From positions 186,001 through 250,000 of IMG/VR virus record IMGVR_UViG_3300035156_000206: a stretch of DNA of 64,000 nt; one strand, written 5' to 3'. A program made the position numbers and the translations under genes. How positions within the stretch are numbered: position 1 is the stretch's first letter; each line of letters starts with the position of its first letter. Under the pieces are notes generated by a model. That model had not been told where the DNA came from, ran no database searches, and worked only from the letters and a program-made list of their open reading frames with translations. Shown in pieces: positions 28,947 to 35,704 of the stretch.

Positions 28947-29555
28947 ATGCTAGTACCAGTATCAGGCAGTCAAGGCTGCGGCAAGACAACCATTATCAAT
29001 GAGTTGTATAAAGCAGGCCACCCAATCATCCAACGCAAGACCTCGCGATCTATTCTGAGTGAATGGGGCGTATCCCTAAACGAAGTCAACCAAGATCCAC
29101 AGTTGACGATGAAGTTCCAGGAAGAAATCATCCGTCGCAAGTTTCTGGACGAAAAAGAAGCCATTGAATCAGACCAAATCGTGTTCACCGAGCGTACGTA
29201 CGCCGACTTGTTCACGTATGCATTGGTTGCATTAGGTCGTGATAACGACTTTGATGACTGGCTTCGTGACTACTACCTTCGGTGTATGACTTACCAACAG
29301 TCGTACTCGATGGTGTTCTATCTCACTGCTGGACACTTCACAGTGCAAAAGGATGGCGTGCGTGCATCCAACAAACAGTACAGCACACTGGTTGACTTGA
29401 GCATGCAAGAGTTCACCCGACAAATGACGTCGCACAATCGACTAAATATCGTCTCCACACCAGTTCTGCAAGAGCGCAAGACCATCATCGAAGTACAGAC
29501 GCTGTCAGCGCTCAACCCAGCTGCATTCAATTTGAACCTTCTCCAGTCGCTGTAA
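28947..29555 (+). CDS. P-loop nucleotide kinase (AAA_28/dNMP-kinase-like)
   Basis: GSQGCGKTT, FTERTYAD, Y.MVFYL and DGVR motifs. Confidence 0.75.
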   Translation: MLVPVSGSQGCGKTTIINELYKAGHPIIQRKTSRSILSEWGVSLNEVNQDPQLTMKFQEEIIRRKFLDEKEAIESDQIVFTERTYADLFTYALVALGRDNDFDDWLRDYYLRCMTYQQSYSMVFYLTAGHFTVQKDGVRASNKQYSTLVDLSMQEFTRQMTSHNRLNIVSTPVLQERKTIIEVQTLSALNPAAFNLNLLQSL

Positions 29556-29672
29556 CATCATAGCAAGGACACCAGTCGAACAAATAATTGGTGTCTTTGT
29601 TCAGAACATGATGTATCATGCGTAGCGTCAGCAGTCTACAAATTGACCAAACATTTGAAAACAGGAAATTAC

Positions 29673-30698
29673 ATGGAATACAACAAAATTCGCAGCACGG
29701 ACTACTCGGAAAAGATGGACGACACCATCTTCACATACGACGAGCAGTTCTACCCACTGGACAGTGACCTACCAGATCCTCAGGTCGATCCTGTGATTCC
29801 TGGCAAGCGTGTCATGATCCAGAAAGTTGGTATTGCTCCAGTCGATCTGCCAGTGAAGTTGCTGCGTCGTGATGGTGGTGTACAGGTTCTCCAGACAGAA
29901 GCATCGCTGTATTGCTCACTGGATGACATGAACGCAAAAGGCCTAAACCTGAGCCGTCTGTATCTGATCATGCACGACACGATCGAAAACCAACTGTCAC
30001 TCGATGGCATCAAGGCAGCTCTGCACAATCTGGCAACCAAGCAAGGTAGCAAGAATGCATACTGCAAGCTGCGCTTCAAGTACCCATGGCATCAGGAAGC
30101 TCTGCGTACCCGTAAGGAACTTGCGGCAATCCCTGAAGGCGCAGTTCACGATCCAATGCTGACGCAGACTCTGTCTGATGGCACTGTGATCAACCGTGAG
30201 AAGATGGTTGGCCACATCGCTTATAAGACCGAGATCGAAGGTCAATACATCGACGGCAAGTACAAGTTCTTCCTGACGGTGGACTATGTGTACTCTTCAA
30301 CTTGCCCATGCAGCTTCGAACTGTCACACAATGCTCGCAACTATCGCAAGCAAGCGGCCAATGCACACAGCCAGCGTTCGATCGCAAAAGTCAAAGTGCA
30401 ATTCAATCCAGACAACGTTGTGTGGGTCGAAGATGTGGTTGAACTGTGCCGTCATCAGATCCCAACGGAAGTTCAGATCGTGGTCAAGCGTCGTGATGAA
30501 CAAGCATTTGCTGAACTGAACGGTTCGAACCTGCTGTTCTCGGAAGACACGGCCCGCCTGTTGTACGAATCACTCGATCAGTGGTACGACTCAGGCAAGA
30601 TCAGCGACTTCAGTGTATCGATCTCCCACGAAGAGTCGTTGCACCCATGGAACGCAATCGCGGTTGTCTACAAAGACATCCCAGGCGGTCTGCGCTAA
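29673..30698 (+). CDS. folE2: GTP cyclohydrolase IB (FolE2)
   Basis: IQKVGI..V.LPV, SSTCPCS.ELS, AHSQRS, KR.DEQ.FAE and HEESLH motifs. Confidence 0.92.
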   Translation: MEYNKIRSTDYSEKMDDTIFTYDEQFYPLDSDLPDPQVDPVIPGKRVMIQKVGIAPVDLPVKLLRRDGGVQVLQTEASLYCSLDDMNAKGLNLSRLYLIMHDTIENQLSLDGIKAALHNLATKQGSKNAYCKLRFKYPWHQEALRTRKELAAIPEGAVHDPMLTQTLSDGTVINREKMVGHIAYKTEIEGQYIDGKYKFFLTVDYVYSSTCPCSFELSHNARNYRKQAANAHSQRSIAKVKVQFNPDNVVWVEDVVELCRHQIPTEVQIVVKRRDEQAFAELNGSNLLFSEDTARLLYESLDQWYDSGKISDFSVSISHEESLHPWNAIAVVYKDIPGGLR

Positions 30699-30703
30699 TC
30701 AAT

Positions 30704-30719
30704 AGGCCCTTCGGGGCCT
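30704..30719 (+). terminator. UUCG tetraloop hairpin (terminator or stabilising stem)
   Basis: AGGCCC-TTCG-GGGCCT followed by GTTTT. Confidence 0.6.
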
Positions 30720-30742
30720 GTTTTAACTAACAAAGGAACAAC

Positions 30743-33500: not shown

Positions 33501-34018
33501 TGTTGGCGAACCCTACCGATATGATCGCGCAGGGGTTCGTCAAGAACCTCAAAGACGTGAACAAGCAAGTACAGCCAAATGCAATCGACTTCACTGTTGA
33601 CCAGATCCAGATGATCGGTGATGGCACATCAGAGCACGATTGCATCATTGGCGAGAGCAAGAAAGAGATGGCTCCACAAACGCCAATCGCTGCGAATATG
33701 GAGGGATTCTTTCCTCTAATTGCCAACCGGTCGTACGATATCTCGTCAGATATGTACGTTGAAGTGCCAGCGGGATATGCTGCCATCCTAGTGCTACGGT
33801 CGACCTTTGTTCGAAACGGTATGATCTTGGCATCCGGTCTCTATGACAGTGGCTTCAAAGGCAACATTGGTGCTGTTCTGCACACCAACAATGCAAATGC
33901 ACTGGTTGAAAAGGGCGTTCGCATTGGCCAAATCATGTTTGTTGAATCCAACTCACATGGCGTCTATGCAGGTGGCTACAACACAGCAGATGGCATTCAC
34001 TGGAAAGACAAAGCATGA
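33500..34018 (+). CDS. Trimeric dUTPase/dCTP-deaminase superfamily protein
   Basis: QVQPNAID, RST..RNG, SGLYDSGFKG, RIGQI and Y.GGY motifs. Confidence 0.85.
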   Translation: MLANPTDMIAQGFVKNLKDVNKQVQPNAIDFTVDQIQMIGDGTSEHDCIIGESKKEMAPQTPIAANMEGFFPLIANRSYDISSDMYVEVPAGYAAILVLRSTFVRNGMILASGLYDSGFKGNIGAVLHTNNANALVEKGVRIGQIMFVESNSHGVYAGGYNTADGIHWKDKA

Positions 34019-34386
34019 TCAATGTTACTCCTACTACAATGAGCCTCAAGCCAGGAGAAGTTCTGGTATTGACGGTCGATGTAGCCAACCTACCTGCACA
34101 AAAGGCAGCCGAAGTAATGAGGCACGTCAAGGAGTTCAACGAATTGGCGGTGCATGCCCGGGAGAACGGCAACGTTGTATTGGTAAAATCCAACCGGGTG
34201 CAAGCAGAAGTGCTGTCGTATGGTCCAGAAGATCGTGTTGTGGCATACGTAGATATTGGTAATCTGCCTAGACAGGCGGCCGAAAAGTATCTGGAGCATG
34301 TGCGGGAGCAGTTGAAAGAATCGATCCCGTCGGACCAAACGTTGGTGGTAGCCAAGGGCAACAAGTTTGAGGTCCAGAAAGCATGA
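34015..34386 (+). CDS. Small protein made of two portal-clip-like repeats
   Basis: TVDVANLPAQKAAEVMRHV and YVDIGNLPRQAAEKYLEHV resemble T4-type portal YVDTGNMPARKAAEHMQHV (recalled from memory). Confidence 0.6.
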   Translation: MINVTPTTMSLKPGEVLVLTVDVANLPAQKAAEVMRHVKEFNELAVHARENGNVVLVKSNRVQAEVLSYGPEDRVVAYVDIGNLPRQAAEKYLEHVREQLKESIPSDQTLVVAKGNKFEVQKA

Positions 34387-34646
34387 AAACGATCATTCAC
34401 GTCAACCAACACGTCATCAAGTCGAACCGTAAGGATGGGGTGAATGATCCTGTTCTTACAGTCAAGACCTACAAGGACAACACATACGCGCACAGCGTCG
34501 AAATCAAAGGCGATAGCAAGGTGGTATATAGCCCTGACAAGCCTTTGAGTTGTGGGGCCCACGTATGGATTGAGACCCATGCAGAGGTTATCTGCCACCT
34601 AAACCCAACAGAAGAAGAAAATGAAAAAACGACCAGCAATGTTTGA
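34383..34646 (+). CDS. Hypothetical phage protein (IIHVNQH.I...P.LTVK...PLSCGA.VWIET)
   Basis: 87 aa; motif familiar from phage hypotheticals; function unknown. Confidence 0.7.
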   Translation: MKTIIHVNQHVIKSNRKDGVNDPVLTVKTYKDNTYAHSVEIKGDSKVVYSPDKPLSCGAHVWIETHAEVICHLNPTEEENEKTTSNV

Positions 34647-35244
34647 CCTAGTCCTGGCACTAGATTCTGAAACGTCCGGAATTGCCATGGGCTCTCTTGA
34701 TCCCACTTACAGGTCCGATCCGGGCGTGGGTGCCGAACGGTACCAAGCCGTATCCTTTGGACTGATTGTGGCAGATGTCCACACTCTGAAACCTATCGAT
34801 TCGTTGTACGTCGAGATTAAGCACGATGACAACTACTACAATTGGTCCGATGGCGCTGAGCGAGTGCACGGCCTGTCCCGTGAATACCTGGAAGCTAACG
34901 GCATGTCACTGGTTGACGCCGCCACTAAAATCCTGAACTTCATCGAAAAGTACTTCGGTCCGTATCAGGCAATCCGTAAGCTGCCAATGCTCGGCCACAA
35001 CGTAGCCACATTCGACCGCTACTTTTTGCATGACCTACTGAGCCACATCGACGTTGAGATCCAATTCGGCAATCGACACATCGATACGTTCTCGCTGGGT
35101 GTAGTTCTGATGGATCTATTTTCTTCGGATGAACTGTTTGACTTTTTCGAACTAAAGCGTGATGCTGAGAAGCATAATGCACTTGATGATGCGAAGTATG
35201 CTCTCAAGGTGGCTCGTCTGATGAAAAAGAACTTCCAAGCCTAA
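34639..35244 (+). CDS. DEDDh 3'-5' exonuclease (DnaQ/epsilon-like)
   Basis: LDSETSG, GHNVATFD, IDT and HNALDDA motifs. Confidence 0.88.
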   Translation: MFDLVLALDSETSGIAMGSLDPTYRSDPGVGAERYQAVSFGLIVADVHTLKPIDSLYVEIKHDDNYYNWSDGAERVHGLSREYLEANGMSLVDAATKILNFIEKYFGPYQAIRKLPMLGHNVATFDRYFLHDLLSHIDVEIQFGNRHIDTFSLGVVLMDLFSSDELFDFFELKRDAEKHNALDDAKYALKVARLMKKNFQA

Positions 35245-35254
35245 GGGGAACCGT

Positions 35255-35704
35255 ATGACCGTAGCAAAAATTCGTTATTCGTACAACCAAATCACGCAGA
35301 TGTGCGAAGATCTGGCTGAAATTATTAACGACATGGATGAAGCCGAGAAGCCAAAGACTATCGTTGGCTTGATCCGTGGTGGTTGCATTCCAGCTGTGAT
35401 CTTGTCGCACTTGACCAAGATCCCTTGCAAGATGTTGTCCTATTCTTCGCATCAAGGATTTGGCGGCGGTGAGAATGACAACCAGATCCCAGGTGACATT
35501 CTGGAAGGTGTGATGCAACTGTTTGTAGATGATATCTGCGATTCAGGCTACACCCTGAAAGAAGTGATGGAAGCGTGTGGTGAAGGTATGGGCAACCTAT
35601 CAGCCTCATTGATCTACCGTGATCACACTAAGTCACAATTCGATCCAGACATGTATGCCACGCGCATCACCGATTCAAGCTGGGTAGTGTTTCCCTGGGA
35701 ATAA
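35255..35704 (+). CDS. Purine phosphoribosyltransferase (Gpt-like)
   Basis: IVGLIRGGCIPA, LFVDDICDSGYTL (PRPP-binding) and WVVFPWE motifs. Confidence 0.88.
   Translation: MTVAKIRYSYNQITQMCEDLAEIINDMDEAEKPKTIVGLIRGGCIPAVILSHLTKIPCKMLSYSSHQGFGGGENDNQIPGDILEGVMQLFVDDICDSGYTLKEVMEACGEGMGNLSASLIYRDHTKSQFDPDMYATRITDSSWVVFPWE

Follow-up and report, generated by a model that had tools for sequence, protein, structure and literature searches.

Predicted nucleotide-pool enzymes interleaved with the 7-deazaguanine genes of a jumbo phage

In published models, the replacement of guanine by 7-deazaguanine in phage DNA is explained by editing of the finished DNA. A 292 kb jumbo-phage record (IMGVR_UViG_3300035156_000206) raises the question of whether control of the nucleotide pool is also involved. 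The window analysed here is a stretch of 64,000 nucleotides of this record, in which the pathway genes are interleaved with four genes that resemble enzymes of nucleotide metabolism. The first-pass annotation, made from the sequence alone, listed these as a Gpt-like phosphoribosyltransferase (PRTase), a P-loop kinase, a trimeric dUTPase-fold enzyme and a HAD phosphatase. It proposed that base plus PRPP could give 7-deaza-GMP and then the dNTP, with dGTP depleted, or that the enzymes simply recycle the guanine released by DpdA. The observation itself is confirmed, since all four genes are present on the + strand among the pathway genes. The interpretation is only partly supported, as set out below.

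The deazaguanine genes and their interleaved neighbours

The pathway genes lie on the + strand within positions 28947–38524 of the window and encode FolE2, QueD, QueE, DpdL and DpdA, while no QueC was found. This is the 2'-deoxy-7-deazaguanine (dDG) pathway of Cui et al. 2023 (PMC10516641). GTP cyclohydrolase IB (FolE2, 29643–30698), the first step from GTP, was identified by PF02649 (1.4e-55). QueD, the 6-carboxytetrahydropterin synthase (30743–31222, motif CNLIHGY), was matched by PF01242 (9e-18), phrog_2389 (1.3e-40) and TIGR03367 (1e-9). DpdL (32028–32435), the proposed 7-carboxy-7-deazaguanine (CDG) decarboxylase, carries LRDPHRHMF, which fits the published LxxxHRHxF signature, and tblastn found it in 29 phage records, including phiST and ACP17. 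DpdA (32437–33288) gave no Pfam TGT hit but has MDNGAF and CDSSS motifs. Using hhalign, it scored 99.3% (E 4e-20) to immuto DpdA3 and 98.8% (E 1e-16) to phiST DpdA3, against 9% to Iggy DpdA, which places it in subfamily DpdA3. QueE, the radical SAM CDG synthase (37625–38524), lies outside the span of the first-pass annotation (28947–35704); it was matched by phrog_2076 (6.6e-47), and several NCBIfam QueE models hit weakly.

The first of the four interleaved genes encodes a P-loop kinase of the AAA_28 family (28947–29555; 202 aa from the ATG, although the ORF opens at GTG 28905). It was matched by PF13521 (7e-13), with a weak dNK hit. The nearest folds to its structure model (pLDDT 88.8) in a Foldseek search were thymidylate kinases (3tmk, 2pbr) and deoxyadenosine kinases (8puu, 2jas), with TM scores of 0.6–0.66, rather than guanylate kinase. 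It has 387 homologues and lies directly upstream of FolE2 in every context examined, and hhalign gave 92% to immuto gp203, the kinase in the deazaguanine cluster of that phage.

The second is a DCD/dUTPase-fold enzyme (33500–34018), matched by PF22769 (2e-14) and modelled with a pLDDT of 91.9; Foldseek TM scores to DCD-DUT and archaeal dUTPases were 0.73–0.79. The archaeal dUTPase model NF002598 scored 72.9 bits, below its cut-off of 130. The catalytic Glu of DCD-DUT (in ITLEL) aligns with Val, which indicates a predicted (d)NTP pyrophosphatase that is not a dCTP deaminase. The "trimeric" state is inferred from the fold only.

The third is the Gpt-like, 6-oxopurine-type PRTase (35255–35704), matched by PF00156 (2e-12), the purine PRTase 1vdm (1e-12) and Sulfolobus GpT-2 (5e-8). 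The best NCBIfam model was the xanthine PRTase NF006613 (6e-10), far below the equivalog cut-off. The VDDICDSG motif is conserved in all phage homologues.

The fourth, a mini-HAD phosphatase-like gene (ORF 31247–31603, probable start 31283), is the weakest assignment. DxDxT and DDD motifs were read from the translation and an Atlas score of 0.96 to viral "HAD family hydrolase" clusters was obtained, but there was no Pfam or NCBIfam hit, and phrog_4256 and phrog_4919 are both of unknown function.

Two further genes in the span were not listed in the first-pass annotation. An Acb2/Tad1-hairpin-like gene of an anti-defence sponge family (31706–31957; PF24729, 6.8e-10) is not part of the pathway; a gene of the same Pfam family sits right after the pyrophosphatase in the related locus L024. 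A DEDDh (DnaQ/RNase T-like) 3'-5' exonuclease (34621–35244; PF00929 1e-6, phrog_192 3e-20) is syntenic with the module: it follows the pyrophosphatase in the related loci L009, L010, L018, L019 and L024 and in the P0132 contig, and phiST has a DEDDh exonuclease next to QueD.

Co-occurrence of the accessory genes with DpdL and DpdA

Co-occurrence with dpdL/dpdA had been named beforehand as the test of the proposal, and it was found for three of the four enzymes. The pyrophosphatase subfamily occurs in only 4 of 50,697 phage records, the same 4 that hold the closest DpdA. It adjoins DpdA in D479, Ahp1, RHph_I1_18 and MA9V-3, and in all seven metagenomic contexts sampled it lies 0–2.8 kb downstream of DpdA. 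However, most of the sampled metagenomic contexts belong to one broad phage clade and are not independent. Ahp1 and D479 carry a canonical dUTPase elsewhere, so that in these phages the subfamily is not the housekeeping dUTPase.

A small kinase sits in the cluster in at least seven lineages, and the pyrophosphatase and kinase positions are filled by non-orthologous genes in other phages. The order in phiST is MazG-DpdL-AAA_18-DpdA3 and in MA9V-3 it is DCD-like-DpdL-AAA_18-DpdA3, while immuto and the locus L012 use PRA-PH. The MazG-like neighbours in phiST and immuto showed no sequence match to any solved structure. A DNMK gene directly follows DpdA in D479 and Ahp1, where in Ahp1 it is a divergent second copy beside a canonical gp1; a weak DNMK match (E 0.003, below cut-off) was found in that position in Bakedbeans. 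In contrast, ACP17 carries DpdL without an obvious kinase or pyrophosphatase within 8 kb. Two DpdA1/2-type controls with partial modification, Iggy and phiSM, show none of these genes within 6 kb, although there are only these two controls.

PRTase homologues have deazaguanine genes in the fetched DNA in six of seven lineages. In phiST, the PRTase is followed by a DNMK-like gene (24 bits, just under the Pfam cut-off) and lies near the RNR gene. However, PF00156 is absent from the whole genomes of five DpdL/DpdA phages and from the relative L018. This indicates that the PRTase is accessory and that the specific route from base plus PRPP to 7-deaza-GMP cannot be the general one. The PRTase also keeps the Asp that contacts purine N7 in HGPRT/XGPRT. 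The mini-HAD has no homologue in any fetched locus, not even in L009, which is 61–85% identical, and is thus a variable insert.

The absence of any functional link seems very doubtful in view of these data. It is true that the island lies among replication genes (clamp loader, Pol III-like fragment, exonuclease), that phage nucleotide-metabolism genes often cluster, and that the HAD and Acb2-like genes are clearly passengers. However, the same three functions recur with different protein families in a Cbastvirus, an Immutovirus, a Straboviridae member and jumbo phages. The pyrophosphatase profile matches that of DpdA exactly, and the PRTase homologues are nearly confined to deazaguanine contexts.

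The closest described system is the dDG pathway of Cellulophaga phage phiST, which has the same enzyme set, the DpdL signature and DpdA3, and in which no QueC was found. In the present island, FolE2 replaces FolE, a DCD-fold enzyme replaces MazG, an AAA_28 kinase next to FolE2 stands in place of the AAA_18 gene between DpdL and DpdA3, and the PRTase lies inside the island rather than 18 kb away. The phiST study contains no mention of a PRTase or a kinase. Its authors noted the MazG/dUTPase-like neighbour without assigning it a pathway role, and set aside the P-loop gene CGPG_00066 because other phages lack a homologue. The recurring accessory module is absent from the papers that could be searched.

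Post-replicative editing or a pool swap

The published model is purely post-replicative. In this view, DpdA3 does all the replacement on DNA, the PRTase and kinase recycle the excised guanine to GMP, GDP and then GTP for FolE2, and the DCD-fold enzyme is the ordinary dUTPase of the phage. The first-pass annotation was right that the model of Cui et al. 2023 is post-replicative, as the authors argue from the presence of DpdA, and TGT-family enzymes are known only on polymers. However, Hutinet 2019 (PMC6884629) records that a modified-dGTP route had been proposed for Campylobacter phages. Several findings fit the post-replicative model. The kinase pairs most tightly with FolE2 in this clade, even where no DpdA is nearby, which fits GTP supply as well as it fits phosphorylation of dDGMP. 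The PRTase is Gpt-like and keeps the VDDICD Asp typical of 6-oxopurine PRTases. The pyrophosphatase scores best against dUTPase models and is the only dUTPase-fold gene in this genome, so that here it may simply be the dUTPase. On the other hand, the model does not explain why this pyrophosphatase subfamily occurs only with this DpdA clade, why Ahp1 and D479 keep it beside a canonical dUTPase, or why Ahp1 has a second, divergent dNMP kinase next to DpdA. The MazG and PRA-PH enzymes in the same slot and the TMK/dNK fold of the kinase also speak against it. The model remains viable, although it is considered less likely than the pool swap described below.

A housecleaning role is less likely still. 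Abundant free 7-deazaguanine would be salvaged by host PRTases into 7-deaza-GTP and 7-deaza-dGTP, which the pyrophosphatase, and here the HAD, would destroy to protect transcription and GTP-dependent functions. A pyrophosphatase (DCD-like, MazG or PRA-PH) does sit in the cluster in many lineages, Nudix genes lie near QueE in relatives, and TubG shows that a Nudix enzyme is used in deazapurine nucleotide metabolism. However, a co-conserved kinase and a phage-encoded PRTase act in the opposite direction, and the HAD is not conserved.

The tentatively preferred reading is a genome-wide guanine-replacement island with two arms. The base arm is inferred from homology: FolE2, QueD and QueE would turn GTP into CDG, DpdL would decarboxylate it, and DpdA3, the subfamily tied to 100% replacement in phiST, immuto and CP220, would exchange guanine for 7-deazaguanine. 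For the pool arm, the association with the pathway genes is what the analysis shows, whereas its chemistry, including the substrates of all four enzymes, is inferred. In this view, the pyrophosphatase would hydrolyse dGTP to dGMP, and the kinase would phosphorylate the 7-deaza-(d)GMP that host kinases may handle poorly, so that the polymerase is fed dDGTP. The phage has its own RNR. DpdA3 would then either make the deaza-dGMP by base exchange or remove residual G from DNA. The PRTase most likely returns the guanine freed by DpdA to GMP and then GTP, which would refuel FolE2; alternatively, it may ribosylate CDG or 7-deazaguanine (DG). The mini-HAD would be a local passenger. The wider idea of the first-pass annotation, pool manipulation with dGTP depletion, thus gains support from the pyrophosphatase and kinase, but sequence alone cannot separate it from guanine recycling.

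Ribosylation of CDG has a precedent in tubercidin and toyocamycin biosynthesis (PMC6112128), where a GTP cyclohydrolase, QueD and QueE (TubC/A/B) cluster with a purine-type PRTase (TubE or ToyH). TubE joins CDG to PRPP, and decarboxylation then gives a 7-deaza-GMP. TubE rejected 7-deazaguanine itself, the decarboxylase belongs to the UbiD family and not to DpdL, and the product is a secreted nucleoside and not DNA.

The logic of the proposed pool arm is that of T4 and of the Z-genome phages. In T4, a dCTPase (gp56), a dCMP hydroxymethylase (gp42) and a dNMP kinase (gp1) establish hydroxymethylcytosine, and a predicted dNTP pyrophosphatase and a dedicated dNMP-kinase-type gene likewise sit beside the base-modifying enzyme here, with gp1-family kinases used in D479 and Ahp1. 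However, the modifying enzyme here is a TGT-family transglycosylase, no enzyme is shown to modify a mononucleotide, and the pyrophosphatase has a DCD fold rather than that of gp56. Z-genome phages replace a purine completely by making the analogue nucleotide (PurZ) and hydrolysing the canonical dNTP (MazZ and DatZ); no PurZ-like nucleotide synthase is present here, and dGTP hydrolysis is inferred rather than demonstrated. Taken together, the predicted nucleotide-destroying enzyme, nucleotide kinase and purine-salvage enzyme travel with the deazaguanine genes in unrelated phages. This suggests that complete guanine replacement also needs control of the nucleotide pool, not only editing of finished DNA.

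Composition of the deazaguanine island

The window covers bases 186001-250000 of a 292 kb viral record, which is estimated to be 84% complete, and its + strand carries a tight run of genes from 28947 to 38524. The run begins with a P-loop kinase (28947-29555), which is followed by FolE2 (29643-30698; PF02649, 1.4e-55), QueD (30743-31222; PF01242, 9e-18), a predicted mini-HAD (31283-31603), an Acb2/Tad1-like gene (31706-31957), DpdL (32028-32435) and DpdA (32437-33288). Downstream of DpdA lie a 70 aa ORF (33288-33500), a dCTP-deaminase (DCD)/dUTPase-fold enzyme (33500-34018), two small ORFs (34015-34646), a DEDDh exonuclease (34621-35244), a purine-type phosphoribosyltransferase (PRTase; 35255-35704), two unknown ORFs (35714-36821), a NADAR gene (36826-37356) and QueE (37625-38524; phrog_2076, 6.6e-47). 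The first-pass annotation had reported that a Gpt-like PRTase, an NMP-kinase-like gene, a trimeric dUTPase-fold gene and a HAD phosphatase are interleaved with the deazaguanine genes, and this observation was confirmed. Its interpretation, a pre-replicative route to deazaguanine nucleotides with depletion of dGTP or, alternatively, simple recycling of the guanine released by DpdA, is only partly supported.

The product of DpdL carries LRDPHRHMF at residues 43-51, which fits the LxxxHRHxF signature that Cui et al. 2023 use to separate DpdL from its paralogue QueD, where CxxxHGH is found instead, and it is homologous to the DpdL of phages phiST and ACP17. In Chryseobacterium phage MA9V-3 (9458-10339 of its locus) and Vibrio phage Bakedbeans (9215-10366 of its locus), DpdL is the C-terminal part of a larger protein of 293 aa and 383 aa, respectively, the N-terminal domain of which has no Pfam match. 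The DpdA of the island has no Pfam hit. However, an hhalign comparison showed that a profile of its family matches immuto DpdA3 at 99.3% probability and phiST DpdA3 at 98.8%, but the DpdA of phage Iggy at only 9%, which places it in the DpdA3 subfamily rather than with DpdA1/2. QueC (PF06508) is absent from the record, with the caveat of its incompleteness. The island is therefore the 2'-deoxy-7-deazaguanine (dDG) pathway, with the DpdA subfamily that is associated with complete guanine replacement. Such complete replacement is known only for CP220, phiST and immuto.

The PRTase is closest to archaeal purine PRTases (1vdm, 1e-12) and has the type I PRTase signature (PF00156, 2e-12). The PRPP motif, an acidic pair followed by Asp (DDxxD), is present as VDDICDSG in all 13 aligned phage homologues, and in HGPRT and XGPRT the third Asp contacts purine N7. 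The best NCBIfam model is that of a xanthine PRTase (NF006613), but the score of 38.8 bits is far below the equivalog cut-off of 138, so that "Gpt-like" describes resemblance only. The kinase is predicted to fold confidently (pLDDT 88.8) and has a Walker A motif (GSQGCGKT). Its nearest structures in Foldseek are thymidylate kinases and deoxyadenosine kinases, at E 2e-6 to 1e-4, and not guanylate kinase. It could not be placed in a named kinase family (TMK, dNK, Gmk or DNMK), since only AAA_28 scores above its cut-off, dNK reaches 0.004, and neither an NCBIfam kinase model nor DNMK was found. The presence of an AAA_28/NadR-like kinase, a PRTase and a NADAR gene could suggest NAD salvage. This reading was rejected because the PRTase is a 149 aa Gpt-like purine enzyme, the kinase has a TMK/dNK fold and pairs with FolE2, and no Nampt-type enzyme is involved.

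The model of the DCD-fold enzyme has a pLDDT of 91.9, and it resembles the trimeric dUTPase superfamily with TM 0.73-0.84. The phosphate-binding and catalytic motifs (RS, DxGxxG and RxxQ) are kept, with R100, S101, D116, G118, G121, R141 and Q144 invariant. It was considered whether this gene encodes a dCTP deaminase, but the catalytic Glu in the ITLE strand of the Bacillus halodurans and Mycobacterium tuberculosis enzymes aligns with Val in this clade, and the deaminase reading was rejected. It is therefore a predicted NTP pyrophosphatase, the base preference of which does not follow from its sequence; the archaeal dUTPase model NF002598 gives 72.9 bits against a cut-off of 130. The HAD assignment rests only on motifs that are visible in the sequence and on Atlas neighbours that are named HAD, as no match was found in the HMM libraries searched.

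Association of the accessory genes with DpdA

A megablast search of the island against 50,697 phage records gave no match. At the protein level, tblastn against the same records found the pyrophosphatase subfamily in four of them, namely Vibrio phages D479 and Bakedbeans, Aeromonas phage Ahp1 and Rhizobium phage RHph_I1_18, and these are exactly the four records with the closest DpdA. In D479 and Ahp1 the enzyme follows DpdA and a kinase, in RHph_I1_18 it follows DpdA directly, and in MA9V-3, as a DCD-like gene, it precedes DpdL. Among 361 metagenomic homologues, all seven contexts that were sampled have a DpdA homologue 0-2.8 kb upstream, although most of these belong to one broad jumbo-phage clade and are not independent. 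Ahp1 and D479 also encode a canonical dUTPase elsewhere, so that in those phages the DpdA-linked enzyme is an extra copy. In the present genome, by contrast, there is only one dUTPase-fold gene, which favours the rival view that the enzyme is here an ordinary dUTPase.

The same positions are filled by different families in other phages. The order in phiST is MazG, DpdL, an AAA_18 P-loop gene and DpdA3, while MA9V-3, whose DpdA3 is 43% identical to that of phiST, has a DCD-like gene, DpdL, AAA_18 and DpdA3. Immuto reads QueD, QueE, PRTase, FolE, DUF4494, PRA-PH hydrolase, DpdA3, DpdN, AAA_28 kinase and QueF, and its kinase belongs to the kinase family of the window (hhalign 92%, with a shared DGVRxxN motif). 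An immuto-like metagenomic contig (L012, 1586-6755) has QueD, QueE, FolE, PRTase, DUF4494 and PRA-PH followed directly by DNA polymerase B, and no DpdA, DpdN, kinase or QueF was found in the next 10 kb, with only one half of the contig seen. D479 and Ahp1 have a DNMK (T4 gp1-type) gene directly after DpdA, whereas Bakedbeans has only a weak DNMK match in that position (E 0.003, below cut-off). Since Ahp1 also has a full canonical gp1 elsewhere, its DpdA-adjacent copy is a divergent paralogue. Comparison of Bakedbeans gp188 and of phiST gp065 and gp066 with the kinase family of the window showed P-loop similarity only, and gp065 scores as DNMK-like, just below the Pfam cut-off. The MazG-like enzymes of phiST and immuto gave no sequence hits to solved (d)GTP-specific MazZ-type structures.

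Two controls with DpdA1/2-type clusters and partial modification, Iggy and phiSM, show no such genes within 6 kb. However, ACP17 has DpdL but no obvious kinase or pyrophosphatase within 8 kb. In CP220, the Que genes are dispersed and poorly annotated.

Homologues of the PRTase are rare. In the phage collection they occur in the phiST family, in immuto and in one gut contig, and the protein collection adds 13 relatives; a search for related loci with the PRTase alone found nothing. Deazaguanine genes lie in the DNA examined in 6 of 7 lineages, although in phiST the PRTase is in the same genome but 18 kb from the cluster, where it is followed by a DNMK-like gene (24 bits, just under the Pfam cut-off) and lies near the RNR large subunit. 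PF00156 is absent from the whole genomes of D479, Ahp1, MA9V-3, Bakedbeans and RHph_I1_18, and it is also missing from the locus examined in relative L018. The PRTase is thus tied to the pathway but dispensable. The HAD has no homologue in any of the loci examined and was rejected as a member of the pathway.

In this clade the kinase was always found directly upstream of FolE2, even in distant relatives where no DpdA lies within 8 kb, which favours the rival post-replicative view with salvage. Two of these distant relatives, the contig of P0202 and locus L020 (7974-9675 and 15820-16488), keep the kinase-FolE2 pair and a PRTase but show no DpdA, DpdL or DCD-like gene within 8 kb. One of them has an IMPDH/GMP-reductase-family gene next to FolE2. 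A GTP cyclohydrolase, a GMP-reductase-like gene and a PRTase together resemble the tubercidin/toyocamycin cluster, which suggests that this may be a nucleotide-level deazapurine route without DpdA.

Other genes in and around the island

The Acb2/Tad1-hairpin family, to which the gene at 31706-31957 belongs, is a cyclic-nucleotide sponge family, and in relative L024 a gene of the same Pfam family (6600-6824) directly follows the pyrophosphatase. The NADAR-domain gene between the PRTase and QueE (36826-37356) is conserved in the relatives L009 (11314-11856), L010 (16939-17448) and L023 (6569-7057), and in L023 it comes right after the pyrophosphatase. NADAR enzymes reverse ADP-ribosylation of guanine bases, which makes this a curious partner for a guanine-replacing phage. 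L010, whose PRTase is 42% identical, carries an HD_4 hydrolase, a nucleoside 2-deoxyribosyltransferase-family gene (PF05014) and a Nudix gene next to QueE (9670-10284, 12925-13317 and 14768-15184). PF05014 is absent from the genome of the window, while Nudix genes also lie near QueE in L018, L019 and L023.

Of the small ORFs, a 123 aa ORF (34015-34386) has a short match (residues 73-107) to the T4 portal protein family and to phrog_23805, and it may be a domain fragment reused in a small early protein. A 161 aa protein of unknown function (35714-36199) is conserved after the PRTase or the exonuclease in L009, L010, L018, L019, L023 and L024 (31-81% identity), and Atlas hints at a winged-helix/HTH fold are below the useful score. 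Just upstream of the kinase lies a 306 aa, extremely acidic (Asp/Glu-rich) protein (27948-28868), which is conserved in L009 and of which a fragment is conserved in L020.

Further upstream, at 22299-22976, 22939-23874 and 25990-26568, a GIY-YIG homing endonuclease overlaps the start of a clamp-loader gene, and a 192 aa ORF matches only the finger domain of DNA polymerase III alpha, which suggests a split or fragmented Pol III-type replicase. phiST and MA9V-3 also use Pol III alpha. A 1124 aa protein at 42080-45454 has about seven stretches of collagen triple-helix repeats (PF01391, 4.5e-71). Relatives of this phage (the contig of P0132, and L019 at 8-610) carry tellurite-resistance-type genes (TelA, TerC, TerD and vWA-TerF), a superoxide dismutase and a GGDEF-EAL protein close to the deazaguanine island.

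A possible role in the nucleotide pool

The identity of the pathway, the assignment to DpdA3, the folds (from models), the loss of the deaminase Glu and the co-occurrence patterns are established by this analysis. Every substrate, in contrast, is inferred, as are the presence of dDG in the virion DNA, the complete replacement of G in this phage, and any hydrolysis of a canonical dNTP or polymerization of an analogue. A pyrophosphatase and a kinase act in opposite directions on a nucleotide pool, and the clearest known precedent for a phage keeping both next to a base-modifying enzyme is a pool swap, as in T4 or the Z-genome phages. The pattern also matches published facts, among them that DpdA3 phages replace 100% of G and that the ADG nucleoside was seen in CP220-infected cells. 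A model is therefore tentatively favoured, short of even confidence, in which dGTP is hydrolysed, a 7-deaza-(d)GMP is phosphorylated and dDGTP is polymerised. In this view, DpdA3 would either make the deaza nucleotide by base exchange or clean up residual G, and the PRTase would recycle the excised guanine into GTP for FolE2. TubE provides biochemical precedent for a purine-type PRTase acting on CDG, though TubE rejected 7-deazaguanine itself. The phage has its own RNR, so a ribonucleotide route is feasible.

The main rival, which is considered less likely, is the published post-replicative model with salvage and an ordinary dUTPase. It is favoured by two observations, the single dUTPase-fold gene of this genome and the pairing of the kinase with FolE2. 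A more radical and improbable possibility is that DpdA3 enzymes are not (only) DNA editors but would exchange the base on dGMP within a three-step operon: a dGTP pyrophosphatase, then DpdA3 with 7-deazaguanine made by DpdL, then a dedicated dNMP kinase. Fully substituted deazaguanine genomes would then be built from dDGTP during replication. This would be the first nucleotide-level member of the tRNA-guanine transglycosylase superfamily, and it would also explain why DpdA3/DpdL reconstitution failed.

The dDG pathway and DpdA3 were known before, and a modified-dGTP route was floated for Campylobacter phages and later set aside. No paper in the library searched links a PRTase to phage deazaguanine clusters. 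Cui et al. 2023 mention neither a PRTase nor a kinase; the MazG/dUTPase-like neighbour in phiST was noted without being given a pathway role, and the P-loop gene was dismissed because other phages lack a homologue. The recurrent module across non-homologous families appears to be a new observation.

These findings bear on how DpdA3 phages reach 100% guanine replacement, given that DpdA1 and DpdA2 phages reach at most about 30% and that the published attempt to rebuild the dDG pathway in E. coli failed. Concrete candidates for the missing parts can now be named: a DpdA3-linked pyrophosphatase, a small kinase and a Gpt-like PRTase. As the same three functions recur, using different protein families, in the experimentally characterised phages phiST and immuto, the pre- versus post-replicative question becomes directly testable in culturable phages, which include phiST, immuto, Ahp1 and D479. 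If the pool-swap reading holds, it adds a third purine-replacement strategy alongside Z-genomes, and it supplies enzymes for making 7-deaza-dGTP DNA in vivo.
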